This document shows, in pieces, positions 16,561 to 61,624 of a stretch of DNA of 64,000 bases (the first letter of the stretch is position 1; the number at the start of each line of letters is the position of its first letter). The position numbers and the translations under genes were made by a program. The notes under the pieces were generated by a model, which worked only from the letters and a program-made list of their open reading frames with translations, had not been told where the DNA came from and searched no databases. The stretch comes from Macrostomum lignano. Lineage: Eukaryota. The stretch spans positions 1 to 64,000 of the forward strand of contig NIVC01001443.1 of NCBI GenBank assembly GCA_002269645.1. Reading direction: 5' to 3'.

Positions 16561-16870
16561 AAAATAAAAGCAAGTAAAACGGTGCAAGAGGCTTACAAAG
16601 GATTTTGACTAAATTAAATTAATTCTATTAATAGCAACTAATTGACACTAATAATAACTCTCCAGTGCAATCTGGGCTCGGTGTACTTAAAGGGATTTAT
16701 AATAATTAAAAAAAGATTGCTCCAGTTCATTCCAGTTCAGCAAAAAAGCACATTAAAAAATACAACATGAAAGCGTTGTTGGCTCTAAGATCTTTCGTTT
16801 TGTAGGGGTTGTATGTTGCGGTATGAGATTAGAATAAAAGACAATTTCTAGACAATTTTAGTCACTAAGC

Positions 16871-17715
16871 CAAGGGGTCGGCAACTCCGGCCCTCGGGGT
16901 CCTTTCACGATATACCAATCCGGCCCGCTCAAGGCTTGTATCTCTTCTCCCTTCTCTCTAATATGCTCTCCTCTCCCTTCTCTCCTCTCCTCTCCTCTCC
17001 TTCCCTCTCTCCTCTCCTCTCCTCTCTCTCCTTCCCTCTCTCCTCTCCCTTCTCCCCTCTCCTCTCTCTTCTCTCCTCTCTCTTCTTCCCTCTCTCCTCT
17101 CCTCTCCTCTCTCTTCTTCCCTCTCTCCTCTCCTCTCTCTTCTTCCCTCTCTCCTCTCCTCTCTCTTCTTCCCTCTCTCCTCTCCTCTCTCTTCTTCCCT
17201 CTCTCCTCTCCTCTCTCTTCTTCCCTCTCTCCTCTCCTCTCTCTTCTTCCCTCTCTCCTCTCCTCTCTCTTCTTCCCTCTCTCCTCTCTTCTCTCTTCTT
17301 CCCTCTCTCCTCTCCTCTCTTCTTCCCTCTCTCCTCTCTTCTCTCTTCTTCCCTCTCTCCTCTCCTCTCTCTTCTTCCCTCTCTCCTCTCCTCTCTCTTC
17401 TTCCCTCTCTCCTCTCCTCTCTCTTCTTCCCTCTCTCCTCTCCTCTCTCTTCCTTCTCTCCTCTCCTCTCTCCTCCTCCTTCTCTCCTCTCCTCTCTCTT
17501 CTCTTCCCTTCTTTCTCTTCTCTCCTCTCTTTCTCTTCTCTCCTCACTTTTGTCTTCTCTCCTCTCTCTTACCTTCTCACCCCCTTCCTCTCCTCTCTCT
17601 CCTCTCCTCTCCCTTCTCTCCTCTCTTTCTTCTCTTCTCTCTTCTCTCCTGGGCCACAGTCATGCGCTGGATTCTTTATCTGACCCTTTGGGTAAAAAAA
17701 GTTTGCCGGCGCCTG
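16871..17715 (-). mobile_element. Non-autonomous hAT-like DNA element (MITE) with internal CT/AG low-complexity tract
   Basis: 8-bp TSD CACTAAGC at 16863-16870 and 17716-17723. Imperfect TIRs CAAGGGGTCGGCAAC / CAGGCGCCGGCAAAC resemble hAT-Charlie (MER58-type) ends. Confidence 0.8.
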
Positions 17716-21534: not shown

Positions 21535-24500
21535 TTATTCATTTAGAAACCGCTCCAGCTCCTCTTCCTCTTTGGACAGAACTGCTTTCGGCTGCTGCTG
21601 CTGCTGTTGCTGCTCAGAAGCAATTGCTCGCTTGCCCGACTTTGTCTTGACCGACTTTTCTGGTTTGACTTTCGATTTTGACTTTGACTTCGGCCTGACC
21701 GGAGGCTCGGGCTGTTCCGGCTCCACCGGCTGCTGCTGCTGTTGCTGCTTTGTCTTCTTCTTTCGCTTCTTCTTGGTCTGCTGCTTTTGCTCCTCAGCTG
21801 ACGGCTCGGGCAGAACCTGAGACTCTGCCGGCTCGTCTTCGTACCTGGTAGTGTGAGCCAATGTTGAACTTATCAAGACAAGAGAGTCTTCTGTCAATAG
21901 ACGATCAGCACACAGACCGTAATAGGCCTTGGGGAGCGATGACCTACAAAGTGACCCTTCTGGAGAGAGATGATGCACACTGTGACCATTCTGGGACAGC
22001 AATGACCCACACTATGACCATTCTGAGAACAGCGATGACCCTTACAGTGACCATTTTGGGGACAGCAATGACCCATGCAATGACCATTCTGAGGACAGCG
22101 ATGACCCACACTATGACCATTCTGAGAACAGCGATGACCCTTACAGTGACCATTCTGGGACAGCAATGACCCACACTATGACCATTCTGAGAACAGCGAT
22201 GACCCTTACAGTGACCATTTTGGGGACAGCAATGACCCATGCAATGACTATTCTGAGGACAGCGATGACCCACACTATGACCATTCTGAGAACAGCGATG
22301 ACCCTTACAGTGACCATACTGGGGACAGCAATGACCCATACAATGACCATTCTGAGGACAGCGATGACCCACACTTTGACCATTCTGAGAACAGCGATGA
22401 CCCTTACAGTGACCATACTGGGGACAGAAATAACCCACACAATGACCATTCTGAGAACGGCGATGACCAACGACCCATACAATGACCCTTTTTGTGACAG
22501 CAATGACACAAAATTATCATTTTTAAACTCAAAATGAACCTTTTTAGGGAGAGGTGATGACTCATAGTCCCCCTAGTGGGTGGGCAGAGATGACCCAAAG
22601 CGATCATACAATATGACCCTCCTGAGGACAACAATGTCCCACACAAAGTTAACTAACTAGAGCACAAACAGAAGGCGATGATGACACAAAAATGGCTCAA
22701 TATTGACCACAACACGCAAAAGCTTTCTGTCAGCAATTGTTCCTATCTAAATATATCGTTTCCAAACTTACTTGGCCAAGAGAGGTCCCCAGTCAATCAC
22801 CGGAGCAGGGGCAGGCGGCACTGCGACCGTCTCTACCTGCTCAGCATCCTCAGCTTCATCACCATCGCCATCAACAGCATCGGCATCAGCAGCAAAAGCA
22901 GCCACTGCAGAATCATCCAGTTCAGCAACATCGTCAAAGCGGGTCGACACGACAGCTCCGGGTAAAGCGTCATCGCTGTCGACATCGTCGGCGACATCGA
23001 CATCCGCATTCGCGACGCCGTCGATCGCATCGACGCCGACCTCGGCAGCGTCAGCAGCAGTCGGGCTGCGCTGACTGGAGGACTGGCTGCTCCTTTCATC
23101 ATCCGCTCCAGCCGGCTCGGGTCGGCTCGGCGACAGCGGCGGCGGCGTCGGCGAAGACGGCAGCTTTGGCTGATGATGAGGCGGAGGCTGAGGCTGCTGA
23201 GATTGCGGCGAAGGCGGCTGCGGAGGCTGGGGTAGCTGAGCGCGACGCAGCTCCATCAGGTACTGCTCGGCGCCGGGAATCAGACGGGCGGGCGGCGCGG
23301 ATAATCGACCGACAACAGCGGGAGGTGACTGTGACGGCAGCGGACTGAGCGGAGACGGGGTCTTAGGCGCGGCGTCGGTGACCGAAGTCTGTTGTTGGCT
23401 GGGTCAAGTTGGAGATAGAGTAGAGTAGAGGATATTTAATTTAATATTGCCCTCCTGCACTTTATAGCATCGCTAATTTTATTGGAAGCCGTCTGATTTC
23501 GCTCAATGATTTATGAAGCAGATCGATACCGACTACTGTACACGCGAAAACACGCCTACACTCAACTATATAATAGAAATGCAGCACCTTCTTCTCTCAG
23601 GTCAGGATGGCCGAGCGGTCTAAGGCGCTGCGTTCAGGTCGCAGTCCTCTTCTGAGGGCGTGGGTTCGAATCCCACTTCTGACAAAAACTTTTTGCGATT
23701 TTATTTTTTTAATCAAAAATGAAAAAATTCTACAAACTAAGTATTTTAGATTTTGTTTTGATTTTCTCTTTAAAAATGTTGAACAACAGCTCATTAAAAA
23801 CTCATTATAAATTTAACAATAGAAAACTCATACCTAGCAAAATTTTGTAGGCGTGAAAAGTGTTTTCGATACATATCGGCCAAGGTTTTACAAGCCGCAA
23901 ATGCATGCCGTATGCCTTTTGAAATATTAAATATATAAAGTAGATGCTTCAGAAATTTTCAAACAACAATTTTAAATTAAACATGAATTAAAAAATGCAT
24001 TTGCATTTATATTGCAACTTTATATTGAAATTTTAAAACAAATACTCGGTACCCATAGGCCATAGCCCAGCTAGATACAAAAAAATCAATTCTTAATAAA
24101 ATTGGATGTTACTTACCTGGAATCGGAAATTCTCGATGCGTCTTCTTTCTTTTTTGAACGTGTGTGATCCATCCTGCAATTAAACAAAACAAATAGAACG
24201 GTTATTAACAGCGTGTTTTTCTTGTTATATCAGATAGCGATTATAATGTCCGTTACGTGCTACTAACAATAAATTAAACAAATACAGTTGTAAGCCTGTC
24301 GTTTTGGTTTAGCTTTCTAATAGCAAAATACACTTATTTAAACTAACCAAAACCCACCCCTGTTAAATCAATTCGCCTTCCAAACCTCCTCAGACTCCAT
24401 TCTAGACACTCCAATCCGCCCAGACTCCATCCTAGACATTCCAATCCCCAGACTCCATCCTAGACACTTCAATCCCCCAGACTCCATCCTAGACACTCCA

Positions 24501-26269
24501 ATCCCCCAGACTCCATCCTAGACACTCCAATCCCCCAGACTCCATCCTAGACACTCCAATCCGCTCCAGACTCCATCCTAGACACTCCAATCCGCTCCAG
24601 ACTCCATCCTAGACACTCCAATCCCCCAGACTCCATCCTAGACACTCCAATCCCCCAGACTCCATCCTAGACACTCCAATCCCCCAGACTCCATCCTAGA
24701 CACTCCAATCCCCCAGACTCCATCCTAGACACTCCAATCCCCAGACTCCATCCTAGACACTCCAATCCCCAGACTCCATCCTAGACACTCCAATCCCCCA
24801 GACTCCATTCTAGACACTCCAATCCGCCCAGACTCCATCCTAGACATTCCAATCCCCAGACTCCATCCTAGACACTTCAATCCCCCCAGACTCCATCCTA
24901 GACACTCCAATCCCCCAGACTCCATCCTAGACACTCCAATCCCCCAGACTCCATCCTAGACACTCCAATCCGCTCCAGACTCCATCCTAGACACTCCAAT
25001 CCCCCAGACTCCATCCTAGACACTCCAATCCCCCAGACTCCATCCTAGACACTCCAATCCGCTCCAGACTCCATCCTAGACACTCCAATCCCCCAGACTC
25101 CATCCTAGACACTCCAATCCCCCAGATTCCATCCTAGACACTCCAATCCCCCAGACTCCATCCTAGACACTCCAATCCGCTCCAGACTCCATCCTAGACA
25201 CTCCAATCCCCCAGACTCCACCGTCCAACCCAGCAAAGATATGCCAGAAAACGCACCCATCATTGGCCTGGCGACTCTCCTCCTCTTCGAGCTGCAGCTC
25301 CAGCACAGCGGTAGTCCTGTCCTCGGTGTTGGCTTCTAGCCGCTGCAATAGTCGCTGTCGCTGAGCGCAGAGGTAGGGCAGGCAGAGGAACCGGTGCACA
25401 TACTTCAGCCCGTAGCCATTTCGCATGGAGGACTCGGCGTAGCGGGTGATCTCGAGCCGCCGGCCGCTCTCCCGGATGGCCATGCGGGCCTGGTCGGCGG
25501 TGACGCTCCGGTGGTGCCCCATGTCTCGGTGATTGGCCAGAACCAGCACCGGCAGGTCCGGCGGCGCCCTGGCCAGCTCCCGCTCTACGTAGGCCATCGT
25601 CCAGGCCTTCGTCATGTCCAGCATCAGCACCACGCCGTGGCAGCCAGCGTAGGCTGCGGCCGCTGCCGCTTCGTCGCTGCCGGCTGAGCCGCCGCTGACA
25701 GCAGCTGTGGGGATTCAAGGATATGGACTGAACATCCCGGCATAACAGACAGCTCTTAACAGGACAAGATATGATCCTAACCTGCTCGAAAGCGAATCCC
25801 AGATCCATCCCGCACTCTTAAATGTTAGACAGTCTCTCTCACCCGAAGCAGCACCTCCCGGACTTCGATTGTCGCAGTCGTTGGCCAGTTTCAGACCCGC
25901 CCGAGCCCGCCTGGGCCGCCCGGAGTCCACGGCGTCCCACACCTGCAGCGTGGCAGATCTGGAGTCGCATTTCCAGCGAATGATAGCGGAGCGCGGGCGC
26001 TCAGTTGGCGCGTACTCCTCAATGAAGGCGCCACCCTGCAGGCGCGCCAGCAGGCAGGACTTGCCAACGCTACTGTCGCCGCGGATGACAATCTTTAGCG
26101 TGTCTGCCGGCTCCACCGCCTGGCTTCTAACAGGCCGGCGCTGCGCCAGCTGCTTTGGCTTGCCCTGCTGCTGCGGCTGCTGAGATGGCAGCAGCGATGG
26201 CGACCCCGCAGCAGTTTCTGCCTCACCAGGGCGTGTCGAGGGCTTCAGAATGCGGCTGATGAAAGACAT
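21535..26269 (-). CDS. RABL6: Rab-like protein 6 homolog, 5 exons, ~622 aa
   Basis: Exons 26269-25843, 25704-25257, 24173-24117, 23398-22772 and 21844-21535 (1869 nt, phases consistent). Motifs: LKIVIRGDSSVGKS, EEYAPT, LQVWDAVD, CHGVVLMLDMTK, ANHRDMGHHR, RYAESSMRNGYGLKYVHRF. Pro/Ser/acidic low-complexity middle, Lys-rich tail ending EEEELERFLNE. Exons 3-4 are less certain. Confidence 0.88.
21955..22510. repeat. 33-bp minisatellite in RABL6 intron 4
   Basis: ATGACCCACACTATGACCATTCTGAGAACAGCG and variants. Confidence 0.93.
23601..23684 (+). tRNA. tRNA-Leu (anticodon CAG), long variable arm
   Basis: GTCAGGATGGCCGAGCGGTCTAAGGCGCTGCGTTCAGGTCGCAG...GGGTTCGAATCCCACTTCTGACA. Intact acceptor, D, anticodon and T stems, A and B boxes, and a TTTTT Pol III terminator at 23690-23694. 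Confidence 0.96.
24392..25221. repeat. 28-31-bp minisatellite in RABL6 intron 2
   Basis: (ACTCCATCCTAGACACTCCAATCCCCCAG)n, about 28 copies. Confidence 0.95.
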
Positions 26270-30560: not shown

Positions 30561-33500
30561 CTAATCCAGCTCCTTCTCCATCTTGATCAGCTCGGCGATG
30601 CCGTGGTTCATCTTGCTGACAGCATCGAACTCGGTGAGACCCATGCGCTCCTTGTTGGAGATGTCGTAGAGTCCGCCGACAGCCTCGGAGTGCTCACCGG
30701 CTGAGCCGCGCACCTGCAGCTGGAACCGGTCGGCCACGCGCTGCAGAGCTTCCTGGCCTCCAGCGGCCAGCTTGGGCAGCTTGATGTGCACCGAGGCGCG
30801 GATCGTGGTGCCCAGGTTCGTCGGGCAGAAGGTCAGGAAGCCGAGACGCTCGTAGTGGCTAAACGCCATCCGCTTCTCGATCTCGTTCACCGCGTTCACC
30901 AGCCGGCCGTAGACCTCCCGGATGCAGCCTCCCTTCTGCATCGAGATTATACGCATGTGGTCCTCCTCGCCGACCCACACTAGGAACGTCTTGCTGTCGT
31001 TGTGGTAGATGCCGCGACCCGTCGGCCAGTAGCGGCACGCGTTCGCCTTCTGCAGGAACCGGTCGCCCTCCTTGAACAAAAAGTGGTCGTCAATCAGCTG
31101 CTGCTGCACCTCCTTGGTCATCCCGGTCAGTGGGTAATACGTGCCCTTCAGCTCGCCCGACATGTCCTTCAGCGTGCCCGACACGAGCTCCTCCAGCTGC
31201 TTGTAGTGCTCCTCCGTCATGTTCGGGTTGAACGGGAACTGCTTCACCGACCTGCCGCACCGGATTCGGGTCGACACGACGTACTTTCCCTCCGGGTCCA
31301 CGTCACCGAACTGGTTCGGGTCGCCCAGCGTGCACGGCGGGTGCCTGTCAGTCCGCTTGAAGCCTCCATGGTACTCCTCGATGATCGGGTCGAACAGGTC
31401 GGCGAACACCGTGTACGCCTCGGCGTCGGGAGCGTAGACACCCACTCCGGAGTCGGGGTTCTCCACGCCTGAAAACAGTAATTTGCTTCACTTAATCCAA
31501 TGCTGTTACACCCTTTTGCAGCACCACAAAATACGTACTACAGCGCCGTAAAACCACATGTGTCCCCTTCTGCTCAATTGCACCCTAACCAAAAACTCAT
31601 ACCCAACTAGCTCAGAAGAGACTGCTCAAAAGATTATACTTAAAGGGTTCAGAAACCGTAAAAATATGCTTCATCTGCATGCTCTTCATCAAGAATAACC
31701 TATCAGTAACAAGTAAATACATCAGGCTTATCAACAACTCCAGTACCAACCCTTATTTGTAAGTAAATCAATTTGTACTAAATGATACACCAGTGTGAAT
31801 CGAAACAGATACACCAGTCTGAATCAAAACTGATACACCAGTCTGAATCAAAACTGATACACCAGTCTGAATCAAAACTGATACACCAGTCTGAATCAAA
31901 ACCGATACACCAGTGTGAATCAAAACCGATACACCAGAGTGAATCGAAACAGATACACCAGTCTGAATCAAAACTGACACACTAAACGGCACAATGACAA
32001 CCAGGTACTTAAGGACCTTTAATTAGTTCAGTGAAATTCCCCTTTAAGGTACAAAGAATGCATGCACAGTTGAATGAGAACCGTGGTCACTAATGTATTA
32101 CTGCGTTAATTTTGTCAGCAAAAACAATATCCGTGCATTGTTGAAAATTGTAAGCAAATGCCGGTATGAATACTTCAGTTTTAGCAATGCGTACAATTCA
32201 ATAAACACGTGAAAGAACCAAGAAATCAGAGTCTCCTCACCAGACTGGATCACGTCCTTCAGAGTTGATCCGAATGACGGAGTGCTCATGTTCTTGAGCT
32301 TGTCGACCACCTCCTTGGTGAGGTGCTTCTTCAGCAGTGAGTGGCAAGTGGCGTCGCCCTGCAGCTTCTGGTAGCCGGCTTCGATGTAGCTGACGACCTC
32401 GGTGTCGACGCCTTGCTCGAGCGCCTTCTCCATGCGGATGAGCTCGGCGATGCCGTGGTTCATCTTGCTGACAGCATCGAACTCGGTGAGACCCATGCGC
32501 TCCTTGTTGGAGATGTCGTAGAGTCCGCCGACAGCCTCGGAGTGCTCACCGGCTGAGCCGCGCACCTGCAGCTGGAACCGGTCGGCCACGCGCTGCAGAG
32601 CTTCCTGGCCTCCAGCGGCCAGCTTGGGCAGCTTGATGTGCACCGAGGCGCGGATCGTGGTGCCCAGGTTCGTCGGGCAGAAGGTCAGGAAGCCGAGACG
32701 CTCGTCGTGGCTAAACGCCATCCGCTTCTCGATCTCGTTCACCGCGTTCACCAGCCGGCCGTAGACCTCCCGGATGCAGCCTCCCTTCTGCATCGAGATT
32801 ATACGCATGTGGTCCTCCTCGCCGACCCACACTAGGAACGTCTTGCTGTCGTTGTGGTAGATGCCGCGACCCGTCGGCCAGTAGCGGCACGCGTTCGCCT
32901 TCTGCAGGAACCGGTCGCCCTCCTTGAACAAAAAGTGGTCGTCAATCAGCTGCTGCTGCACCTCCTTGGTCATCCCGGTCAGTGGGTAATACGTGCCCTT
33001 CAGCTCGCCCGACATGTCCTTCAGCGTGCCCGACACGAGCTCCTCCAGCTGCTTGTAGTGCTCCTCCGTCATGTTCGGGTTGAACGGGAACTGCTTCACC
33101 GACCTGCCGCACCGGATTCGGGTCGACACGACGTACTTTCCCTCCGGGTCCACGTCACCGAACTGGTTCGGGTCGCCCAGCGTGCACGGCGGGTGCCTGT
33201 CAGTCCGCTTGAAGCCTCCATGGTACTCCTCGATGATCGGGTCGAACAGGTCGGCGAACACCGTGTACGCCTCGGCGTCGGGAGCGTAGACACCCACTCC
33301 GGAGTCGGGGTTCTCCACGCCTGAAAACAGTAATTTGCTTCACTTAATCCAATGCTGTTACACCCTTTTGCAGCACCACAAAATACGTACTACAGCGCCG
33401 TAAAACCACATGTGTCCCCTTCTGCTCAATTGCACCCTAACCAAAAACTCATACCCAACTAGCTCAGAAGAGACTGCTCAAAAGATTATACTTAAAGGGT

Positions 33501-36500
33501 TCAGAAACCGTAAAAATATGCTTCATCTGCATGCTCTTCATCAAGAATAACCTATCAGTAACAAGTAAATACATCAGGCTTATCAACAACTCCAGTACCA
33601 ACCCTTATTTGTAAGTAAATCAATTTGTACTAAATGATACACCAGTGTGAATCGAAACAGATACACCAGTCTGAATCAAAACTGATACACCAGTCTGAAT
33701 CAAAACTGATACACCAGTCTGAATCAAAACTGATACACCAGTCTGAATCAAAACCGATACACCAGTGTGAATCAAAACCGATACACCAGAGTGAATCGAA
33801 ACAGATACACCAGTCTGAATCAAAACTGACACACTAAACGGCACAATGACAACCAGGTACTTAAGGACCTTTAATTAGTTCAGTGAAATTCCCCTTTAAG
33901 GTACAAAGAATGCATGCACAGTTGAATGAGAACCGTGGTCACTAATGTATTACTGCGTTAATTTTGTCAGCAAAAACAATATCCGTGCATTGTTGAAAAT
34001 TGTAAGCAAATGCCGGTATGAATACTTCAGTTTTAGCAATGCGTACAATTCAATAAACACGTGAAAGAACCAAGAAATCAGAGTCTCCTCACCAGACTGG
34101 ATCACGTCCTTCAGAGTTGATCCGAATGACGGAGTGCTCATGTTCTTGAGCTTGTCGACCACCTCCTTGGTGAGGTGCTTCTTCAGCAGTGAGTGGCAAG
34201 TGGCGTCGCCCTGCAGCTTCTGGTAGCCGGCTTCGATGTAGCTGACGACCTCGGTGTCGACGCCTTGCTCGAGCGCCTTCTCCATGCGGATGAGCTCGGC
34301 GATGCCGTGGTTCATCTTGCTGACAGCATCGAACTCGGTGAGACCCATGCGCTCCTTGTTGGAGATGTCGTAGAGTCCGCCGACAGCCTCGGAGTGCTCA
34401 CCGGCTGAGCCGCGCACCTGCAGCTGGAACCGGTCGGCCACGCGCTGCAGAGCTTCCTGGCCTCCAGCGGCCAGCTTGGGCAGCTTGATGTGCACCGAGG
34501 CGCGGATCGTGGTGCCCAGGTTCGTCGGGCAGAAGGTCAGGAAGCCGAGACGCTCGTCGTGGCTAAACGCCATCCGCTTCTCGATCTCGTTCACCGCGTT
34601 CACCAGCCGGCCGTAGACCTCCCGGATGCAGCCTCCCTTCTGCATCGAGATTATACGCATGTGGTCCTCCTCGCCGACCCACACTAGGAACGTCTTGCTG
34701 TCGTTGTGGTAGATGCCGCGACCCGTCGGCCAGTAGCGGCACGCGTTCGCCTTCTGCAGGAACCGGTCGCCCTCCTTGAACAAAAAGTGGTCGTCAATCA
34801 GCTGCTGCTGCACCTCCTTGGTCATCCCGGTCAGTGGGTAATACGTGCCCTTCAGCTCGCCCGACATGTCCTTCAGCGTGCCCGACACGAGCTCCTCCAG
34901 CTGCTTGTAGTGCTCCTCCGTCATGTTCGGGTTGAACGGGAACTGCTTCACCGACCTGCCGCACCGGATTCGGGTCGACACGACGTACTTTCCCTCCGGG
35001 TCCACGTCACCGAACTGGTTCGGGTCGCCCAGCGTGCACGGCGGGTGCCTGTCAGTCCGCTTGAAGCCTCCATGGTACTCCTCGATGATCGGGTCGAACA
35101 GGTCGGCGAACACCGTGTACGCCTCGGCGTCGGGAGCGTAGACACCCACTCCGGAGTCGGGGTTCTCCACGCCTGAAAACAGTAATTTGCTTCACTTAAT
35201 CCAATGCTGTTACACCCTTTTGCAGCACCACAAAATACGTACTACAGCGCCGTAAAACCACATGTGTCCCCTTCTGCTCAATTGCACCCTAACCAAAAAC
35301 TCATACCCAACTAGCTCAGAAGAGACTGCTCAAAAGATTATACTTAAAGGGTTCAGAAACCGTAAAAATATGCTTCATCTGCATGCTCTTCATCAAGAAT
35401 AACCTATCAGTAACAAGTAAATACATCAGGCTTATCAACAACTCCAGTACCAACCCTTATTTGTAAGTAAATCAATTTGTACTAAATGATACACCAGTGT
35501 GAATCGAAACAGATACACCAGTCTGAATCAAAACTGATACACCAGTCTGAATCAAAACTGATACACCAGTCTGAATCAAAACTGATACACCAGTCTGAAT
35601 CAAAACCGATACACCAGTGTGAATCAAAACCGATACACCAGAGTGAATCGAAACAGATACACCAGTCTGAATCAAAACTGACACACTAAACGGCACAATG
35701 ACAACCAGGTACTTAAGGACCTTTAATTAGTTCAGTGAAATTCCCCTTTAAGGTACAAAGAATGCATGCACAGTTGAATGAGAACCGTGGTCACTAATGT
35801 ATTACTGCGTTAATTTTGTCAGCAAAAACAATATCCGTGCATTGTTGAAAATTGTAAGCAAATGCCGGTATGAATACTTCAGTTTTAGCAATGCGTACAA
35901 TTCAATAAACACGTGAAAGAACCAAGAAATCAGAGTCTCCTCACCAGACTGGATCACGTCCTTCAGAGTTGATCCGAATGACGGAGTGCTCATGTTCTTG
36001 AGCTTGTCGACCACCTCCTTGGTGAGGTGCTTCTTCAGCAGTGAGTGGCAAGTGGCGTCGCCCTGCAGCTTCTGGTAGCCGGCTTCGATGTAGCTGACGA
36101 CCTCGGTGTCGACGCCTTGCTCGAGCGCCTTCTCCATGCGGATGAGCTCGGCGATGCCGTGGTTCATCTTGCTGACAGCATCGAACTCGGTGAGACCCAT
36201 GCGCTCCTTGTTGGAGATGTCGTAGAGTCCGCCGACAGCCTCGGAGTGCTCACCGGCTGAGCCGCGCACCTGCAGCTGGAACCGGTCGGCCACGCGCTGC
36301 AGAGCTTCCTGGCCTCCAGCGGCCAGCTTGGGCAGCTTGATGTGCACCGAGGCGCGGATCGTGGTGCCCAGGTTCGTCGGGCAGAAGGTCAGGAAGCCGA
36401 GACGCTCGTCGTGGCTAAACGCCATCCGCTTCTCGATCTCGTTCACCGCGTTCACCAGCCGGCCGTAGACCTCCCGGATGCAGCCTCCCTTCTGCATCGA

Positions 36501-39500
36501 GATTATACGCATGTGGTCCTCCTCGCCGACCCACACTAGGAACGTCTTGCTGTCGTTGTGGTAGATGCCGCGACCCGTCGGCCAGTAGCGGCACGCGTTC
36601 GCCTTCTGCAGGAACCGGTCGCCCTCCTTGAACAAAAAGTGGTCGTCAATCAGCTGCTGCTGCACCTCCTTGGTCATCCCGGTCAGTGGGTAATACGTGC
36701 CCTTCAGCTCGCCCGACATGTCCTTCAGCGTGCCCGACACGAGCTCCTCCAGCTGCTTGTAGTGCTCCTCCGTCATGTTCGGGTTGAACGGGAACTGCTT
36801 CACCGACCTGCCGCACCGGATTCGGGTCGACACGACGTACTTTCCCTCCGGGTCCACGTCACCGAACTGGTTCGGGTCGCCCAGCGTGCACGGCGGGTGC
36901 CTGTCAGTCCGCTTGAAGCCTCCATGGTACTCCTCGATGATCGGGTCGAACAGGTCGGCGAACACCGTGTACGCCTCGGCGTCGGGAGCGTAGACACCCA
37001 CTCCGGAGTCGGGGTTCTCCACGCCTGAAAACAGTAATTTGCTTCACTTAATCCAATGCTGTTACACCCTTTTGCAGCACCACAAAATACGTACTACAGC
37101 GCCGTAAAACCACATGTGTCCCCTTCTGCTCAATTGCACCCTAACCAAAAACTCATACCCAACTAGCTCAGAAGAGACTGCTCAAAAGATTATACTTAAA
37201 GGGTTCAGAAACCGTAAAAATATGCTTCATCTGCATGCTCTTCATCAAGAATAACCTATCAGTAACAAGTAAATACATCAGGCTTATCAACAACTCCAGT
37301 ACCAACCCTTATTTGTAAGTAAATCAATTTGTACTAAATGATACACCAGTGTGAATCGAAACAGATACACCAGTCTGAATCAAAACTGATACACCAGTCT
37401 GAATCAAAACTGATACACCAGTCTGAATCAAAACTGATACACCAGTCTGAATCAAAACCGATACACCAGTGTGAATCAAAACCGATACACCAGAGTGAAT
37501 CGAAACAGATACACCAGTCTGAATCAAAACTGACACACTAAACGGCACAATGACAACCAGGTACTTAAGGACCTTTAATTAGTTCAGTGAAATTCCCCTT
37601 TAAGGTACAAAGAATGCATGCACAGTTGAATGAGAACCGTGGTCACTAATGTATTACTGCGTTAATTTTGTCAGCAAAAACAATATCCGTGCATTGTTGA
37701 AAATTGTAAGCAAATGCCGGTATGAATACTTCAGTTTTAGCAATGCGTACAATTCAATAAACACGTGAAAGAACCAAGAAATCAGAGTCTCCTCACCAGA
37801 CTGGATCACGTCCTTCAGAGTTGATCCGAATGACGGAGTGCTCATGTTCTTGAGCTTGTCGACCACCTCCTTGTGAGGTGCTTCTTCAGCAGTGAGTGGC
37901 AAGTGGCGTCGCCCTGCAGCTTCTGGTAGCCGGCTTCGATGTAGCTGACGACCTCGGTGTCGACGCCTTGCTCGAGCGCCTTCTCCATGCGGATGAGCTC
38001 GGCGATGCCGTGGTTCATCTTGCTGACAGCATCGAACTCGGTGAGACCCATGCGCTCCTTGTTGGAGATGTCGTAGAGTCCGCCGACAGCCTCGGAGTGC
38101 TCACCGGCTGAGCCGCGCACCTGCAGCTGGAACCGGTCGGCCACGCGCTGCAGAGCTTCCTGGCCTCCAGCGGCCAGCTTGGGCAGCTTGATGTGCACCG
38201 AGGCGCGGATCGTGGTGCCCAGGTTCGTCGGGCAGAAGGTCAGGAAGCCGAGACGCTCGTCGTGGCTAAACGCCATCCGCTTCTCGATCTCGTTCACCGC
38301 GTTCACCAGCCGGCCGTAGACCTCCCGGATGCAGCCTCCCTTCTGCATCGAGATTATACGCATGTGGTCCTCCTCGCCGACCCACACTAGGAACGTCTTG
38401 CTGTCGTTGTGGTAGATGCCGCGACCCGTCGGCCAGTAGCGGCACGCGTTCGCCTTCTGCAGGAACCGGTCGCCCTCCTTGAACAAAAAGTGGTCGTCAA
38501 TCAGCTGCTGCTGCACCTCCTTGGTCATCCCGGTCAGTGGGTAATACGTGCCCTTCAGCTCGCCCGACATGTCCTTCAGCGTGCCCGACACGAGCTCCTC
38601 CAGCTGCTTGTAGTGCTCCTCCGTCATGTTCGGGTTGAACGGGAACTGCTTCACCGACCTGCCGCACCGGATTCGGGTCGACACGACGTACTTTCCCTCC
38701 GGGTCCACGTCACCGAACTGGTTCGGGTCGCCCAGCGTGCACGGCGGGTGCCTGTCAGTCCGCTTGAAGCCTCCATGGTACTCCTCGATGATCGGGTCGA
38801 ACAGGTCGGCGAACACCGTGTACGCCTCGGCGTCGGGAGCGTAGACACCCACTCCGGAGTCGGGGTTCTCCACGCCTGAAAACAGTAATTTGCTTCACTT
38901 AATCCAATGCTGTTACACCCTTTTGCAGCACCACAAAATACGTACTACAGCGCCGTAAAACCACATGTGTCCCCTTCTGCTCAATTGCACCCTAACCAAA
39001 AACTCATACCCAACTAGCTCAGAAGAGACTGCTCAAAAGATTATACTTAAAGGGTTCAGAAACCGTAAAAATATGCTTCATCTGCATGCTCTTCATCAAG
39101 AATAACCTATCAGTAACAAGTAAATACATCAGGCTTATCAACAACTCCAGTACCAACCCTTATTTGTAAGTAAATCAATTTGTACTAAATGATACACCAG
39201 TGTGAATCGAAACAGATACACCAGTCTGAATCAAAACTGATACACCAGTCTGAATCAAAACTGATACACCAGTCTGAATCAAAACTGATACACCAGTCTG
39301 AATCAAAACCGATACACCAGTGTGAATCAAAACCGATACACCAGAGTGAATCGAAACAGATACACCAGTCTGAATCAAAACTGACACACTAAACGGCACA
39401 ATGACAACCAGGTACTTAAGGACCTTTAATTAGTTCAGTGAAATTCCCCTTTAAGGTACAAAGAATGCATGCACAGTTGAATGAGAACCGTGGTCACTAA

Positions 39501-42500
39501 TGTATTACTGCGTTAATTTTGTCAGCAAAAACAATATCCGTGCATTGTTGAAAATTGTAAGCAAATGCCGGTATGAATACTTCAGTTTTAGCAATGCGTA
39601 CAATTCAATAAACACGTGAAAGAACCAAGAAATCAGAGTCTCCTCACCAGACTGGATCACGTCCTTCAGAGTTGATCCGAATGACGGAGTGCTCATGTTC
39701 TTGAGCTTGTCGACCACCTCCTTGGTGAGGTGCTTCTTCAGCAGTGAGTGGCAAGTGGCGTCGCCCTGCAGCTTCTGGTAGCCGGCTTCGATGTAGCTGA
39801 CGACCTCGGTGTCGACGCCTTGCTCGAGCGCCTTCTCCATGCGGATGAGCTCGGCGATGCCGTGGTTCATCTTGCTGACAGCATCGAACTCGGTGAGACC
39901 CATGCGCTCCTTGTTGGAGATGTCGTAGAGTCCGCCGACAGCCTCGGAGTGCTCACCGGCTGAGCCGCGCACCTGCAGCTGGAACCGGTCGGCCACGCGC
40001 TGCAGAGCTTCCTGGCCTCCAGCGGCCAGCTTGGGCAGCTTGATGTGCACCGAGGCGCGGATCGTGGTGCCCAGGTTCGTCGGGCAGAAGGTCAGGAAGC
40101 CGAGACGCTCGTCGTGGCTAAACGCCATCCGCTTCTCGATCTCGTTCACCGCGTTCACCAGCCGGCCGTAGACCTCCCGGATGCAGCCTCCCTTCTGCAT
40201 CGAGATTATACGCATGTGGTCCTCCTCGCCGACCCACACTAGGAACGTCTTGCTGTCGTTGTGGTAGATGCCGCGACCCGTCGGCCAGTAGCGGCACGCG
40301 TTCGCCTTCTGCAGGAACCGGTCGCCCTCCTTGAACAAAAAGTGGTCGTCAATCAGCTGCTGCTGCACCTCCTTGGTCATCCCGGTCAGTGGGTAATACG
40401 TGCCCTTCAGCTCGCCCGACATGTCCTTCAGCGTGCCCGACACGAGCTCCTCCAGCTGCTTGTAGTGCTCCTCCGTCATGTTCGGGTTGAACGGGAACTG
40501 CTTCACCGACCTGCCGCACCGGATTCGGGTCGACACGACGTACTTTCCCTCCGGGTCCACGTCACCGAACTGGTTCGGGTCGCCCAGCGTGCACGGCGGG
40601 TGCCTGTCAGTCCGCTTGAAGCCTCCATGGTACTCCTCGATGATCGGGTCGAACAGGTCGGCGAACACCGTGTACGCCTCGGCGTCGGGAGCGTAGACAC
40701 CCACTCCGGAGTCGGGGTTCTCCACGCCTGAAAACAGTAATTTGCTTCACTTAATCCAATGCTGTTACACCCTTTTGCAGCACCACAAAATACGTACTAC
40801 AGCGCCGTAAAACCACATGTGTCCCCTTCTGCTCAATTGCACCCTAACCAAAAACTCATACCCAACTAGCTCAGAAGAGACTGCTCAAAAGATTATACTT
40901 AAAGGGTTCAGAAACCGTAAAAATATGCTTCATCTGCATGCTCTTCATCAAGAATAACCTATCAGTAACAAGTAAATACATCAGGCTTATCAACAACTCC
41001 AGTACCAACCCTTATTTGTAAGTAAATCAATTTGTACTAAATGATACACCAGTGTGAATCGAAACAGATACACCAGTCTGAATCAAAACTGATACACCAG
41101 TCTGAATCAAAACTGATACACCAGTCTGAATCAAAACTGATACACCAGTCTGAATCAAAACCGATACACCAGTGTGAATCAAAACCGATACACCAGAGTG
41201 AATCGAAACAGATACACCAGTCTGAATCAAAACTGACACACTAAACGGCACAATGACAACCAGGTACTTAAGGACCTTTAATTAGTTCAGTGAAATTCCC
41301 CTTTAAGGTACAAAGAATGCATGCACAGTTGAATGAGAACCGTGGTCACTAATGTATTACTGCGTTAATTTTGTCAGCAAAAACAATATCCGTGCATTGT
41401 TGAAAATTGTAAGCAAATGCCGGTATGAATACTTCAGTTTTAGCAATGCGTACAATTCAATAAACACGTGAAAGAACCAAGAAATCAGAGTCTCCTCACC
41501 AGACTGGATCACGTCCTTCAGAGTTGATCCGAATGACGGAGTGCTCATGTTCTTGAGCTTGTCGACCACCTCCTTGGTGAGGTGCTTCTTCAGCAGTGAG
41601 TGGCAAGTGGCGTCGCCCTGCAGCTTCTGGTAGCCGGCTTCGATGTAGCTGACGACCTCGGTGTCGACGCCTTGCTCGAGCGCCTTCTCCATGCGGATGA
41701 GCTCGGCGATGCCGTGGTTCATCTTGCTGACAGCATCGAACTCGGTGAGACCCATGCGCTCCTTGTTGGAGATGTCGTAGAGTCCGCCGACAGCCTCGGA
41801 GTGCTCACCGGCTGAGCCGCGCACCTGCAGCTGGAACCGGTCGGCCACGCGCTGCAGAGCTTCCTGGCCTCCAGCGGCCAGCTTGGGCAGCTTGATGTGC
41901 ACCGAGGCGCGGATCGTGGTGCCCAGGTTCGTCGGGCAGAAGGTCAGGAAGCCGAGACGCTCGTCGTGGCTAAACGCCATCCGCTTCTCGATCTCGTTCA
42001 CCGCGTTCACCAGCCGGCCGTAGACCTCCCGGATGCAGCCTCCCTTCTGCATCGAGATTATACGCATGTGGTCCTCCTCGCCGACCCACACTAGGAACGT
42101 CTTGCTGTCGTTGTGGTAGATGCCGCGACCCGTCGGCCAGTAGCGGCACGCGTTCGCCTTCTGCAGGAACCGGTCGCCCTCCTTGAACAAAAAGTGGTCG
42201 TCAATCAGCTGCTGCTGCACCTCCTTGGTCATCCCGGTCAGTGGGTAATACGTGCCCTTCAGCTCGCCCGACATGTCCTTCAGCGTGCCCGACACGAGCT
42301 CCTCCAGCTGCTTGTAGTGCTCCTCCGTCATGTTCGGGTTGAACGGGAACTGCTTCACCGACCTGCCGCACCGGATTCGGGTCGACACGACGTACTTTCC
42401 CTCCGGGTCCACGTCACCGAACTGGTTCGGGTCGCCCAGCGTGCACGGCGGGTGCCTGTCAGTCCGCTTGAAGCCTCCATGGTACTCCTCGATGATCGGG

Positions 42501-43375
42501 TCGAACAGGTCGGCGAACACCGTGTACGCCTCGGCGTCGGGAGCGTAGACACCCACTCCGGAGTCGGGGTTCTCCACGCCTGTCATAGTGTTTTGGGGTT
42601 TGTTTTGAATGCACACAACACTTCGTGATTGAGATTTAGTCTCTTGTGATTCCTATTACCTGACTGAATGACATCTTTTAGGGTGGATCCAAAAGTGGCC
42701 GTCTTCAGGCCCTTTAGTTTTTGCAGCACCTCGGCAGTAAGATGTTTTTTTAGCAGGGACTTGCAGTTGGGATCGGATTGCAGCTTTTGGAATCCATCCT
42801 CGAGATAGGCAATGACGGCTGGGTCCACCTCGTTGCTCGCGCCGCTATGGGGGAGAATTTGTTTAATTTTTGCTTAGATATAGTTCGTTTAGTATAAAAA
42901 TAAATTAATTAAACTGCATTACCTGTTATGATTCATGATTCATGAAGGAATATTTTAGTTTATTTTGTGTGTAGTAGTATAAGTAGTAGTTCATGCATGC
43001 ACTCAGATTTTTTGTTGTTTTGATTGTTTTGAAATTGGATTTTACGTTATTTATGGGAGCGGAACAGCCAGGATAGACAGATTAAAAAGCTTTCTAAAAC
43101 AAAATGTCGAAGCAAGGTCAAAAGAATTGGTGTCTCTCATGCAGCTTCATTTGAAACTGGTTTAACGGAAATAATAGCATTCACACATTCATAGGAGAGG
43201 ATTATGCAGTTAGTAGTTCCCCGTGACTTGACATGCAAGAGTTTTGAAAGCAACTGCAGCATGTCAGCACAATCTCCTTACTATCATTAGGGACTACTTA
43301 CCCACTAACCGGTTGAGCATCTGCCGGTCTCGCCTGACCTCTTTGACCTCCTCGGCCTTTAAATAAGTTCCCCAT
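30561..43375 (-). CDS. Multi-domain arginine-kinase-type phosphagen (ATP:guanido) kinase with 7 concatenated domains, ~2530-2550 aa if the 1-bp deletion at ~37873 is an error
   Basis: First exon 43375-43302 (or 42936-42923), exon 42844-42660, then catalytic exons 42579-41500, 40727-39648, 38875-37797, 37024-35945, 35172-34093, 33320-32241 (1080 nt each, one 1079) and last exon 31468-30561. All catalytic introns are phase 1 (QSG|VENPDSG). Motifs: [58 protein letters not shown]. Confidence 0.9.
30589..42582 (-). repeat. Near-perfect tandem array of a 1852-bp unit (1080-bp exon + 772-bp intron), ~6.5 copies
   Basis: ORF starts recur at 31466, 33318, 35170, 37022, 38873, 40725 (spacing 1852, once 1851). 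Exon and intron sequences look identical by eye except a 1-bp deletion (~37873) and a C>A at ~30854. Confidence 0.97.
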
Positions 43376-44454
43376 TTTGACGAGCTGTCTTGTAGGATTA
43401 GACAGTTAAGGAGTTCACTCGAAGGGAACTAAACTTAGTCGAATGGGAGTGGCTTGTGTGATTGATCGGCGCTCCCAGCTTGGCAGTGGCTGCACAGGAG
43501 TGGACACAGTGTGATCTGTGCAGGCAGGCAATGAAATCTCAGGCGCTGCGGGAGGTGTTGGGGTTGTGTCTGAGCTAAAATACGCGGCGGAATCGGGGGA
43601 GTGGGGGTTAGGCTCTCGTAGGACTGGGGGAGGGCCTGCCGCACATGCGTTGAATTAAGTGTACATTATCGGTTGATAATCTTCTTGAGATTGGTTGTTA
43701 CATTGAGACGTGTTGGTCGTCTCGCTGAGTGAGCATAAGGAGGAACAAGATAAGAAGGAATGAGGCAGTTCATTTAAAACATTTGTTAGTGTAAATATGA
43801 CAGCTGCGAAGATTTGTACTTGTCTGCATTGGCACCCAACCCCGCTGTTTATTTGCGTGATGCAAACTAAAGAAACGTCACGCCAAATGTACATGGCATA
43901 TATAAGCGAGTGTACGCGGTGACTGCATGGGTTGGTTGGTTGAGCAAATATTAAACTGCGGTCTGGTTTAGGGACTTGGCGGTGTCAACGGCAAGGCGCG
44001 GGCAAGTGCAGCAAAAAGAGAAGGGAGGTAGGGGGACCCTGATCAACATGTTTGCTGTCAAAGGGTAAAAAATTCGACTAAATAAAAACACGCTAGGTGG
44101 ATAATGCGCGCATATCTCTGGTTAAGAAATCGACTCCGCATGCAAAACGCAATTTAAAGCTATTTTTCATATATACTCAAGTCCCAGCTCCTGGACAAGA
44201 GCCAGAAGAATTTGACAAAACCTACTGAGTTATACCAAGGACGCATTCAAACTGTATTGCGCATATCATATGCGTAGTGCGAATCTCTAAGAAACAGTCT
44301 GTTATATGTGTCAATCAAAGAGAACTTACATCGTTACCGGATCCATCGTTTTAAATAGTTTTTTTGGAACCAAGAGTCAACACTGGGTTTACCCAAGAAA
44401 GCAGAGCTTTGTCCCTATAGGAACTCTACAAAAAAGACTGAGATTGATGTCTAA

Positions 44455-47213: not shown

Positions 47214-48618
<1,405 letters not shown>

Positions 48619-51126: not shown

Positions 51127-54100
51127 ATGCGCGGTCCACTATCGCTGCCACTACCCAGGCGACTGCGCCAACTGGTGCTGGCCAATTTTGCCTGTCCTGG
51201 CAATCGCACTGGCCACCTCGCTCGCCTGGCATTTCGCCTCGCCTCCCATGAGCAGCAGCACGCCTCCCGCCTGTGCGCCGAGGCTTGCATTGATTTGTTG
51301 CCAGCAGCAACACCCGCCTCGCCGGCGACCTGCCTGGAGGTTGGCTTTGGCGCCGGGCACGCGCTGGCCGAGCTGCGACGACTTCGGCCAGTTGGCGAGC
51401 TTCGCCTTCTGGGCGTCGACGCGAGCAGCTTGGCTTTGAAGCTGGCAACGGCGCAGCTTGGCGGCGAGCCCGACAATGCAAAGCTGTTCCACTGCCAGGC
51501 CGACGACCTGCTGCCTGTGGCCACCGGCAGCTGCAACCTGGTTGCTCAGGTAGCTTAGCCTAGGTTGGCTTCGGCTGCCGATTCTTCAGTGTCTGCTCCC
51601 CCGGGTCTTCAGGTGTTGCTACCCCTTTATAGATTTTTTCAGGCGCTGCTATCTTTAGTTCCTCAGGTGCTATTTGCTATTGCCCCCCGTTCTTCAGGTG
51701 CTTTTGCCCCCCGGTTCTTTATGTGCTTTTGCCCACCGGTTCTTTATGTGCATTTGCCCCCCGGTTCTTTATGTGCTTTTGCCCCCCGGTTCTTTATGTG
51801 CTTTTGCCCCCCGGTTCTTTATGTGCATTTGCCCCCCGGTTCTTTATGTGCATTTGCCCCCGGTTCTTTATGTGCATTTGCCCCCCGGTTCTTTATGTGC
51901 TTTTGCCCCCCCCCCCCGGTTCTTTATGTGCTTTTGCCCACCGGTTCTTTATGTGCATTTGCCCCCGGTTCTTTATGTGCTTTTGCCCCCCGGTTCTTTA
52001 TGTGCTTTTGCCCCCGGTTCTTTATGTGCTTTTGCCCCCCGGTTCTTTATGTGCATTTGCCCCCCCCCGGTTCTTTATGTGCTTTTGCCCCCCGGTTCTT
52101 TATGTGCATTTGCCCACCGGTTCTTTATGTGCATTTGCCCACCGGTTCTTTATGTGCATTTGCCCCCCGGTTCTTTATGTGCATTTGCCCCCCGGTTCTT
52201 TATGTGCATTTGCCCCCCCCCGGTTCTTTATGTGCATTTGCCCCCGGTTCTTTATGTGCATTTGCCCCCCCCGGTTCTTTATGTGCTTTTGCCCCCCGGT
52301 TCTTTATGTGCTTTTGCCCCCCCCCGGTTCTTTATGTGCATTTGCCCCCCGGTTCTTTATGTGCATTTGCCCACCGGTTCTTTATGTGCATTTGCCCCCC
52401 GGTTCTTTATGTGCATTTGCCCCCCGGTTCTTTATGTGCTTTTGCCTCCAGTTCTTTATGTGCATTTGCCCCCCCCCGGTTCTTTATGTGCTTTTGCCCC
52501 CCCCCCGGTTCTTTATGTGCTTTTGCCCCCCCGGTTCTTTATGTGCTTTTGCCCACCGGTTCTTTATGTGCTTTTGCCCCCCGGTTCTTTATGTGCTTTT
52601 GCCCCCTCCGGTTCTTTATGTGCATTTGCCCCCGGTTCTTTATGTGCATTTGCCCCCGGTTCTTTATGTGCATTTGCCCCCCGGTTCTTTATGTGCTTTT
52701 GCCCCCGGTTCTTTATGTGCATTTGCCCCCCGGTTCTTTATGTGCATTTGCCCCCGGTTCTTTATGTGCATTTGCCCCCCCCCCGGTTCTTTATGTGCTT
52801 TTGCCCACCGGTTCTTTATGTGCATTTGCCCCCCCCCGGTTCTTTATGTGCATTTGCCCCCCCGGTTCTTTATGTGCTTTTGCCCCCCCCGGTTCTTTAT
52901 GTGCTTTTGCCCCCCCCCGGTTCTTTATGTGCTTTTGCCCCCCCCCCGGTTCTTTATGTGCTTTTGCCCACCGGTTCTTTATGTGCTTTTGCCCCCGGTT
53001 CTTTATGTGCTTTTGCCCCCCCCCGGTTCTTTATGTGCATTTGCCCCCGGTTCTTTATGTGCATTTGCCCCCCGGTTCTTTATGTGCATTTGCCCCCCGG
53101 TTCTTTATGTGCATTTGCCCCCCCCTGGTTCTTTATGTGCTTTTGCCCCCCCCGGTTCTTTATGTGCATTTGCCCCCGGTTCTTTATGTGCATTTGCCCC
53201 CGGTTCTTTATGTGCATTTGCCCCCCGGTTCTTTATGTGCTTTTGCCCCCGGTTCTTTATGTGCATTTGCCCCCGGTTCTTTATGTGCTTTTGCCCCCCG
53301 GTTCTTTATGTGCATTTGCCCCCCCCGGTTCTTTATGTGCTTTTGCCCCCCCCGGTTCTTTATGTGCATTTGCCCCCCGGTTCTTTATGTGCTTTTGCCC
53401 CCCGGTTCTTTATGTGCATTTGCCCCCCGGTTCTTTATGTGCTTTTGCCCCCCGGTTCTTTATGTGCATTTGCCCCCCGGTTCTTTATGTGCTTTTGCCC
53501 CCCGGTTCTTTATGTGCTTTTGCCCCCCGGTTCTTTATGTGCTTTTGCCCCCCCCGGTTCTTTATGTGCATTTGCCCCCCGGTTCTTTATGTGCTTTTGC
53601 CCCCCCCCGGTTCTTTATGTGCATTTGCCCCCCCCCCCCGGTTCTTTATGTGCTTTTGCCCCCCCCCGGTTCTTTATGTGCATTTGCCCCCCGGTTCTTT
53701 ATGTGCTTTTGCCCCCCCCCCGGTTCTTTATGTGCATTTGCCCCCCGGTTCTTTATGTGCTTTTGCCCCCCGGTTCTTTATGTGCTTTTGCCCCCCCCCC
53801 GGTTCTTTATGTGCATTTGCCCCCGGTTCTTTATGTGCATTTGCCCCCCGGTTCTTTATGTGCTTTTGCCCCCCGGTTCTTTATGTGCTTTTGCCCCCCC
53901 CCCCGGTTCTTTATGTGCATTTGCCCCCGGTTCTTTATGTGCTTTTGCCCCCCCGGTTCTTTATGTGCTTTTGCCCCCCCCGGTTCTTTATGTGCATTTG
54001 CCCCCCGGTTCTTTATGTGCTTTTGCCCCCCCCGGTTCTTTATGTGCATTTGCCCCCGGTTCTTTATGTGCTTTTGCCCCCCCCCCGGTTCTTTATGTGC

Positions 54101-61034: not shown

Positions 61035-61624
61035 GATACTGTCGTAATCTATGGCAATGCTTTCCTTAACATCTCTCGTGCTGGTTTGTATGGGGATTGC
61101 TTCATGGAGTCTCGCCTTGTTTGACTAAAGTCTCATTAAGATAAGATCGTCAGAAGCAATGGGAAAGAGGGAGTTTTTGCTAACTGCAGATTGAAGTCAT
61201 GTCATTTCGATCATGGTAGATTTTATCATAGATAAGTTAAAAGCCCCATGCCCCACATTGCTGCAAACTGTCATTTGGCTTATATATATTACCATCGCTT
61301 GGCCATACGAGGCCTTTGAACGCTTCGCATAAGCAGGTGTGTAATATTTTATAGCTAAGTGCCAGAATAGAAATTTCAGTAGTCCATACTTGCCTGTTGC
61401 TTCATTTGAGCCTGTCTATTTCTTCTGCTACCAATTCTTCATTGTTGAAGGGGCCAGTTTATTGCGCTTGATTTAAAAAAATGTGCCTTAGTTTCATAGC
61501 CTGGCGCTTTACTTTAAGGAGCGTATGAGTCTCTTTATACTTTAGTAATGGTATCTTCCTCTGGGAGAATGCAATTTCTCGACTCTGCATTCAGCAGCCC
61601 AAACCGCCCGGCTCTATACCTCTG

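Follow-up and report, generated by a model that had tools for sequence, protein, structure and literature searches.

The 64,000-nucleotide (nt) stretch of Macrostomum lignano DNA analyzed here (GenBank assembly GCA_002269645.1, contig NIVC01001443.1, positions 1 to 64,000), referred to below as the window, carries on its minus strand a tandem run of phosphagen kinase coding units, which an earlier note had read as one gene for a seven-domain enzyme. The locus raises the question of whether these units belong to one gene, which guanidino substrate the encoded domains would use, and how many of the domains end up in a single polypeptide. Our analysis indicates that this is probably a genuine single gene for a contiguous arginine kinase (AK) of at least three domains. 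More tentatively, we put forward the possibility that an intact protein of seven identical active AK domains (2548 residues, 285 kDa) is really made.

A probable single gene built from repeated exons

The kinase gene lies on the minus strand, and our gene model gives it nine exons. Exon 2 (42660 to 42844; 185 nt) lies outside the repeat and codes for the N-terminal helical domain of the first kinase domain, here referred to as A1; an 80-nt phase-1 GT..AG intron (intron 2, 42580 to 42659) joins it to the first large exon. Exon 3 (41500 to 42579) encodes the catalytic part of domain 1 (B), followed by the linker and by an A2 segment, which is the N-domain of domain 2. The same arrangement is found in exon 4 (39648 to 40727), where the catalytic part of domain 2 is joined to the N-domain of domain 3, and in exon 5 (37797 to 38875; domains 3 and 4), exon 6 (35945 to 37024; domains 4 and 5), exon 7 (34093 to 35172; domains 5 and 6) and exon 8 (32241 to 33320; domains 6 and 7). 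Five of these internal exons are exactly 1080 nt long, with exon 5 being 1079 nt. The terminal exon (30561 to 31468) is 908 nt long, counting the TAG stop; it codes for the catalytic part of domain 7, whose last residues before the stop are MEKELD. In each large exon, about 300 amino acids (aa) running from VENPDSG to ELIRMEKAL, which comprise the remainder of the N-lobe and the entire catalytic domain, are followed by the linker EQG and by the N-terminal ~57 aa of the domain that comes next, ending in ..DVIQSG, with the interdomain junction sitting within the exon.

The repeated introns are 772 nt long (GT..AG, phase 1, 38% GC; 31469 to 32240), with identical copies at 33321-34092, 35173-35944, 37025-37796, 38876-39647 and 40728-41499. 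Every unit has the acceptor ..ctgttttcag/GCGTGGAGAAC.. and the donor ..ATCCAGTCTG/gtgaggag.., and the codon split by the repeated introns is G/GC; the introns are therefore in phase 1 and the exons symmetric. The earlier note had described 1080-nt exons in which the C-terminal ~300 aa of one domain are fused to the N-terminal ~57 aa of the following one, phase-1 introns that keep the frame, and a last exon ending in MEKELD and a stop, and this structure was recovered in all these respects (acceptors ..ttttcag/GC, donors ..TCTG/gtgagg).

At the nucleotide level, the repetition forms a head-to-tail array of 6.48 units from 30589 to 42582 (minus strand; 11,994 nt) with a period of 1852 nt, each unit consisting of one 1080-nt exon and one 772-nt GT..AG phase-1 intron. 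When the array was compared with itself at an offset of 1852 nt, identity was perfect in 30589-30853, 30855-36021 and 37873-40730, and at an offset of 1851 nt it was perfect in 36022-37873. The sole private differences are thus one substitution, at 30854, and one deletion of 1 nt close to 37873; otherwise the units are 100% identical, introns included. The substitution lies in the terminal exon and changes Asp to Tyr at a variable position that is occupied by His in shrimp AK. Every repeated intron contains a minisatellite of 8.3 copies of a 24-nt sequence, and Tandem Repeats Finder reported six identical copies of this minisatellite between 31.8 and 41.2 kb, spaced by 1852/1852/1852/1851/1852 nt. 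Such identity is far beyond chance. The copy number of the unit was read from the assembly alone, and 12 kb of identity is compatible with very recent amplification, with ongoing homogenization or with the behavior of an assembler or polisher.

With one domain as the query, tblastn returned seven catalytic and seven N-terminal segments at the locus, in agreement with the seven domains previously counted, and no other fragment of the family in the window. Seven nearly identical phosphagen kinase open reading frames are likewise listed for the minus strand. The internal exons cannot be separate genes, because they start mid-domain and have no ATG, and the introns between them are canonical phase-1 introns. 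These observations support one gene, not a set of tandem genes, as the earlier note had also concluded, and we infer that the exons would be spliced into one mRNA.

The extent of the gene needs to be revised at one end. The earlier note had placed the locus at 30561 to 42844; the lower coordinate stands as the end of the terminal exon, but 42844 is the start of exon 2, which begins with a phase-2 acceptor and has no ATG, and the start exon must therefore be further 5'. Only two ATG-plus-donor combinations within 3 kb join exon 2 in frame. The proximal candidate first coding exon, an ab initio prediction (43302 to 43375, minus strand; 74 nt), begins with ATG, has an in-frame stop 33 nt upstream and ends in a phase-2 GTAAGT donor that suits the exon 2 acceptor. 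The distal alternative (44330 to 44346, minus strand; 17 nt) encodes MDPVT and likewise has a phase-2 GTAAGT donor.

The encoded domains are of the arginine kinase type

The Pfam families PF02807 and PF00217 were each found once per domain and twice in a two-domain test protein, with E-values of 3e-65 and 2.5e-151, respectively. Their order, PF02807 and then PF00217, together with the reactive-cysteine motif CP(S/T)N(L/I)GT, identifies the domains as phosphagen (ATP:guanidino) kinases. In an alignment to the AK of the shrimp Litopenaeus (4BHL), the equivalents of the nucleotide-binding and catalytic residues R124/R126, E225, R229, C271, T273, R280, R309 and E314 are conserved, and so are the guanidino-specificity residues D62, S63, G64, V65 and Y68 as well as R193, which lies within KEGDRFLQ and completes the D62-R193 pair. 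The residues listed as intact in the earlier note (Asp62, Tyr68, Arg193, Glu225 and Cys271) are therefore borne out. The specificity loop is full length and aligns without gaps to ..NLDSGVGIYAPD.. of the shrimp enzyme; position 61 has Pro in place of Leu, which is common among AKs.

At ~70% identity to solved AKs, the predicted AK fold of the domains is not in doubt. With these residues conserved, the seven domains look like competent arginine kinases, and their ~70% identity to characterized AKs makes L-arginine the likely substrate. Trematode taurocyamine kinases (TKs) have a guanidino-specificity loop that is 2 to 3 residues shorter than that of AKs (PMC3836730). No such shortening is seen in the domains studied here; in the alignment to them, the loop of the Schistosoma TK (4WO8) shows a gap and several mismatches (np-gall-), and identity as a TK was rejected in view of the full AK-type loop. 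A 2A-like skipping site at ..VENPDSG.. was also considered and rejected, as the sequence reads NPDS instead of NPGP and ordinary AKs commonly contain GVENPDSG.

Closest sequences

Proteins were searched in a collection of 5.8 billion sequences, and a HMMER scan covered 1.84 billion representative proteins, of which the 150 best scoring were inspected. The nearest proteins are an AK from M. lignano itself (BOX15_Mlig021515g1, P0003; 370 aa), which is 82% identical, and the product of a Logan transcript (P0004; 359 aa), which is 83% identical. Both resemble the domains described here in lineage signatures, although they are single-domain proteins. Arthropod AKs follow at ~70% identity. In the PDB, the best matches are Anthopleura AK (4RF6) and Schistosoma TK (4WO8), with two matches each, followed by the shrimp, crab and Limulus AKs; creatine kinases (CKs) are far lower, at ~40% identity. 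Independent copies of the gene or of its interdomain junction were also sought; no relative showed a fused junction, and the best matches reached 83% in the single-domain search, 75% in a search centered on the junction and 71% among metagenome contigs.

The sole full-coverage match to the junction, P0402 (ENA, 160-aa fragment), is not a fusion but a single-domain AK with a long leader starting MGIFVSK. This protein, which may be a lipid-anchored AK isoform, has a 50-residue acidic N-terminal extension whose start fits the classical myristoylation pattern, and its N-domain is similar to the internal A2 segment. Three further AKs with 73 to 74% identity (P0007, P0008 and P0010, from JGI and Logan; 550 to 584 aa) carry the peroxiredoxin domains PF00578, PF10417 and PF08534, and this AK-peroxiredoxin fusion would be unusual if the gene models are right.

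A one-base deletion interrupts the reading frame as assembled

The earlier note had stated that only the last exon has a stop, and this does not hold for the assembled sequence. In exon 5 (38875-37797), 1 nt is deleted between 37873 and 37872, with one C of CACC missing, which changes CACCTCACCAAGG to CACCTCACAAGG, and the shifted frame hits a TGA at 37844-37842. As assembled, the spliced coding sequence is 7646 nt long, which is not a multiple of 3, and the open frame comprises 1150 aa (128.5 kDa). Two or more complete kinase domains are thus joined in one uninterrupted frame, namely, three, but not seven. When one base is restored, the coding sequence is 7647 nt long and open through all seven domains, encoding 2548 aa (285.2 kDa), and the active-site motif CPTNLGTT occurs seven times in the repaired protein at a spacing of exactly 360 residues. 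Of the earlier prediction of a ~2540-aa, ~285-kDa protein, the size is confirmed once this base is restored, while the continuous open reading frame is not.

Weighing the possible readings

Several observations speak against the reading of this locus as one gene for a contiguous multidomain AK. The premature stop lies upstream of four exon junctions and would normally trigger mRNA decay, and 12 kb without divergence is also what an assembler or polisher artifact is expected to look like. No protein with at least 84% identity is present in the 5.8-billion-protein collection, so that the gene and its junction are without independent confirmation. The predicted start exon at 43302-43375 has a GC content at third codon positions (GC3) of 0.33, which is non-coding-like and makes its coding status uncertain, and no AATAAA or ATTAAA occurs within 1.4 kb downstream of the kinase stop, the first AATAAA being at 29154. 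In addition, the candidate N terminus, MGNLFKG, has Gly2 but carries Lys where the classical N-myristoyltransferase pattern, G-{EDRKHPFYW}-x-x-[STAGCN]-{P}, needs a small residue, and it therefore does not fit this pattern.

The deletion in exon 5 is either a consensus error or a real, very recent mutation. We consider it quite possible, without expecting it, that the frameshift is real. The allele would then make at most the three-domain AK of 1150 aa and 128.5 kDa or be null through nonsense-mediated decay, and the four downstream units would be untranslated, freshly inactivated copies. All internal exons are symmetric, and skipping of exon 5 would therefore give an in-frame six-domain product of 2188 aa. 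The deletion is, after all, present in the assembled sequence, and no further indel occurs in the 12-kb array or in the three exons of a neighboring MMAA gene, which suggests that the local rate of indel errors is low, roughly at most 1 per 10 kb; the MMAA exons, which are free of frameshifts, amount to only ~1 kb, which is too little sequence to judge the deletion by. Domain redundancy would also relax selection on single units. On the other hand, indels are the typical residual error of a long-read consensus, and a premature stop in the middle of a gene under strong codon bias (GC3 0.88) should be selected against. Moreover, with one substitution as the only other difference, the array must be very young or actively homogenized, which leaves little time for an indel to arise.

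It is less likely, although it deserves to be taken seriously, that the copy number is an artifact of assembly and that the real locus encodes a two- to four-domain AK whose 1852-nt repeat was over-expanded (or, equally, collapsed). The complete identity of the units, down to the introns and their internal minisatellites, fits this explanation, the number seven has no independent sequence support in the searched collections, and the unique junctions (A1-B, B::A2, A2-intron-B and B-stop) need only two domains. However, the long minisatellite arrays elsewhere in the window, which reach 4.1 kb, show realistic divergence between units, which indicates that the assembly was built from repeat-spanning long reads, and 12 kb is an ordinary length for such reads. 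The private differences (the substitution at 30854 and the deletion at 37873) further argue that the units are not plain copies of one consensus.

A polyprotein precursor that is cut at the linkers into 40-kDa single-domain AKs, amplified for dosage in the manner of polyubiquitin, is very improbable. Apart from about two extra linker residues, the unit from VD.. to ..MEKALEQG would be nothing more than a complete AK, and the extreme codon bias suggests a demand for high output, but the linker has no recognizable processing site (neither a dibasic motif nor a 2A-like NPGP), and the characterized contiguous kinases, namely, sea urchin CK, Anthopleura AK and trematode TK, work uncleaved. Flatworms have spliced-leader trans-splicing and operons, but separate tandem genes or a trans-spliced polycistron with one protein per unit can be dismissed with near certainty and were rejected, as nothing in the sequence supports them: the internal exons begin at domain residue ~61 without a start codon, the six intact units run from one domain into the next without a stop, splicing of an AUG-ending leader to the acceptors would give the wrong frame, and a lone unit would encode a circularly permuted enzyme.

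The reading of the locus as one gene for a contiguous AK of three or more domains is the one that we prefer. Even if the frameshift or the copy number proved to be an artifact, or the allele null, the locus would still define a new AK with two or more domains, and probably three or more, in a free-living flatworm.

Origin of the array

The single-domain AK gene of M. lignano has a sole intron of 78 nt, in phase 1 and at the same codon (..IQSG/IENLDSG) as the introns described here, although its genomic neighbors differ. From the shared intron position, the ancestral unit would therefore have been exon A, intron, exon B. We propose that the ancestor was a two-exon single-domain AK, in which a phase-1 intron separated exon A, encoding the N-terminal helical domain, from exon B, encoding the catalytic domain, and that two AK copies fused nearly seamlessly to give A1 - intron - B::A2 - intron - B. 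Compared with the terminal ..MEKELD-stop and with the N termini of relatives (M-VD..), the linker has Gln at the former stop and Gly at the former Met. Unequal crossing-over between B segments could then add or remove whole 1852-nt units, and repeated gain would lead to the seven domain-coding units of the assembly. Such changes keep the frame because the B::A2 exon is 1080 nt long and its flanking introns are in phase 1.

One limit of the array coincides with the start of B, 3 nt inside the acceptor, and the other is nine codons short of the stop of B, as predicted if the first B of an ancestor with two domains had crossed over with the last. A1 and A2 share 60% nucleotide and 67% amino acid identity; the proportion of synonymous differences (pS) is 0.85, which is saturated, and that of nonsynonymous differences (pN) is 0.26. 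Purifying selection has therefore long maintained both N-domains, which makes the two-domain state, or else the two parental paralogues, old. The order of events in this scheme is inferred from sequence comparison, and the array itself could also be an older one under concerted evolution instead of the result of recent amplification.

The predicted product

The product would consist of AK modules arranged like beads on a string, each predicted to be active independently and to catalyze phosphoarginine + ADP <-> arginine + ATP. By analogy with the three-domain flagellar CK of sea urchin sperm, such a chain may act as a high-density, poorly diffusible ATP buffer, and a giant AK could terminate a phosphoarginine shuttle in cilia or sperm, as may be compared with the ciliary and flagellar AKs of ciliates and trypanosomes. 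Codon bias is extreme, with a GC3 of 0.875 in the coding sequence (0.84 to 0.90 across exons) versus a GC content of 0.38 in the introns, which fits high expression. Myristoylation of MGNLFK.. is unsupported by the classical pattern, and the alternative start MDPVT is without Gly2; membrane or ciliary anchoring of this terminus is therefore unsupported.

If all seven domains are made, the protein would be the largest phosphagen kinase known, with close to double the number of domains seen in any predicted relative, and its gene would be a coding variable-number tandem repeat (VNTR) of exon-plus-intron units that is still expanding. Copy number polymorphism together with exon skipping could in that case yield a ladder of enzyme forms, from two domains up to seven or more, that suit a compartment with high demand and limited diffusion, for instance epidermal cilia or sperm. 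The locus would then be a natural series in which domain number can be related to catalysis, cooperativity and retention in cilia or flagella, and it may represent protein-size polymorphism by a coding VNTR outside vertebrates.

Within the kinase gene, GC3 is 0.33 in the candidate start exon and 0.59 in exon 2, compared with 0.84 for the internal N-domain segments and 0.90 for the catalytic ones, and the introns have a GC content of 0.34 to 0.38. These differences could be due to age, to origin or to recombination-associated bias. A plus-strand open reading frame (ORF) of 156 aa recurs once per unit (31002-31472, 32854-33324 and so on); these ORFs were rejected as genes and regarded as an antisense shadow of the GC3-rich kinase exon.

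Other features of the window

Minisatellites with periods of 15 to 58 nt make up about a quarter of the window and give rise to long spurious ORFs in several frames. The repeat scan of the window placed arrays at 677-1598, 3456-5083, 8858-9752, 10541-13201 and 14166-17646 and at 21935-22468, 24391-25220, 51671-56095 and 61617-62243. The largest consist of 159 copies of a 25-nt unit (4.1 kb) and of 29/58-nt units (2.7 kb), and a (TAG)n trinucleotide run of ~187 copies occupies 47427-47987.

A gene for an MMAA/MeaB-like GTPase, a homologue of methylmalonic aciduria type A, lies at 17905-20141 (minus strand) in three exons. Both of its introns are filled by 21-nt minisatellites (18456-18979 and 19364-19892), and its best database identity is ~52%. 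A tRNA-Leu(CAG) gene at 23601-23684 (plus strand) is the only match of Rfam and ARAGORN in the window. The ORFs at 25163-26269 (minus strand) include the P-loop of a Rab-like small GTPase (..KIVIRGDSSVGKSCLLARL..) and are probably exons of another gene, and an exon-like ORF at 59944-60339 (plus strand) contains the HxxHH box of ELOVL fatty acid elongases.

Comparison with known systems

Among the 150 best-scoring representatives of the HMMER scan, multidomain kinases ranked at the top and, after rescoring, the maximum was four domains, in keeping with the earlier statement that seven exceeds known relatives. Four-domain proteins are predicted for several protists, for example, Polykrikos kofoidii and Mallomonas annulata (~1700 to 1800 aa), and three-domain proteins for Lineus longissimus (1060 aa) and an ankyrin-fusion isoform of Macrobrachium. 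The protist proteins are built of several PF02807 and PF00217 modules, as is the product described here, but they are ~30% identical to its domains, and their own domains have diverged from each other. No literature on a four-domain phosphagen kinase was found. The four-domain AK of Paramecium that the earlier note had cited as a precedent was likewise not found; a work titled 'four arginine kinases in Paramecium tetraurelia' apparently, to judge by its title, concerns four genes.

The kringle IV-2 repeat of human LPA is a coding VNTR of near-identical, multi-kilobase exon-plus-intron units that are repeated in frame, and unequal recombination expands and contracts these units, giving proteins of variable size. 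It resembles the M. lignano array in the repetition of a symmetric-exon unit, although the protein families are unrelated. Contiguous phosphagen kinases are a textbook case of enzyme evolution via duplication and fusion, a range that seven domains would extend sharply, and with units identical down to their introns, amplification may here be caught in the act with its mechanism still legible.

The genes of two-domain AKs have an intron at the domain bridge, whereas in M. lignano the bridge is inside an exon and the repeat unit is an exon plus an intron. Two-domain AKs, such as that of Anthopleura japonicus (4RF6) and those of clams, e.g., Pseudocardium, are contiguous AKs with short linkers, like the present protein, but they belong to another AK lineage and have two domains only; titles cited in PMC11492440 attribute their origin to gene duplication and fusion. 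The flatworm contiguous kinases known previously are the trematode two-domain TKs only (Schistosoma 4WO8 and Clonorchis CsTK), which arose from an AK gene (PMC3836730). Their domain spacing is similar to that of the M. lignano protein, which exceeds the spacing in 4RF6 by eight residues, falls short of that in 4WO8 by five and is thus within the range of solved contiguous kinases. In contrast, trematode TKs are without the D62-S63-G64-V65..Y68 signature, while the M. lignano domains keep the full AK loop, and the CsTK gene is split by 12 introns into 13 exons, compared with one intron per domain here.

A contiguous CK trimer is documented in sea urchin sperm tails, long organelles in which diffusion is limiting and in which it serves as the end point of a phosphagen shuttle (PMC3080659). 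Like the M. lignano gene, it combines several complete domains in one polypeptide; however, it is of the creatine type and has three mutually diverged domains, whereas the gene described here is of the AK type and has seven identical ones. Myristoylation has been demonstrated at the N terminus of the sea urchin enzyme, whereas the candidate N terminus of the M. lignano protein misfits the classical motif. Taken together, documented contiguous phosphagen kinases have two domains (cnidarian and bivalve AKs and trematode TKs) or three (sea urchin CK); the three domains that are the minimum as assembled would equal the known maximum of characterized enzymes, and seven would be new.

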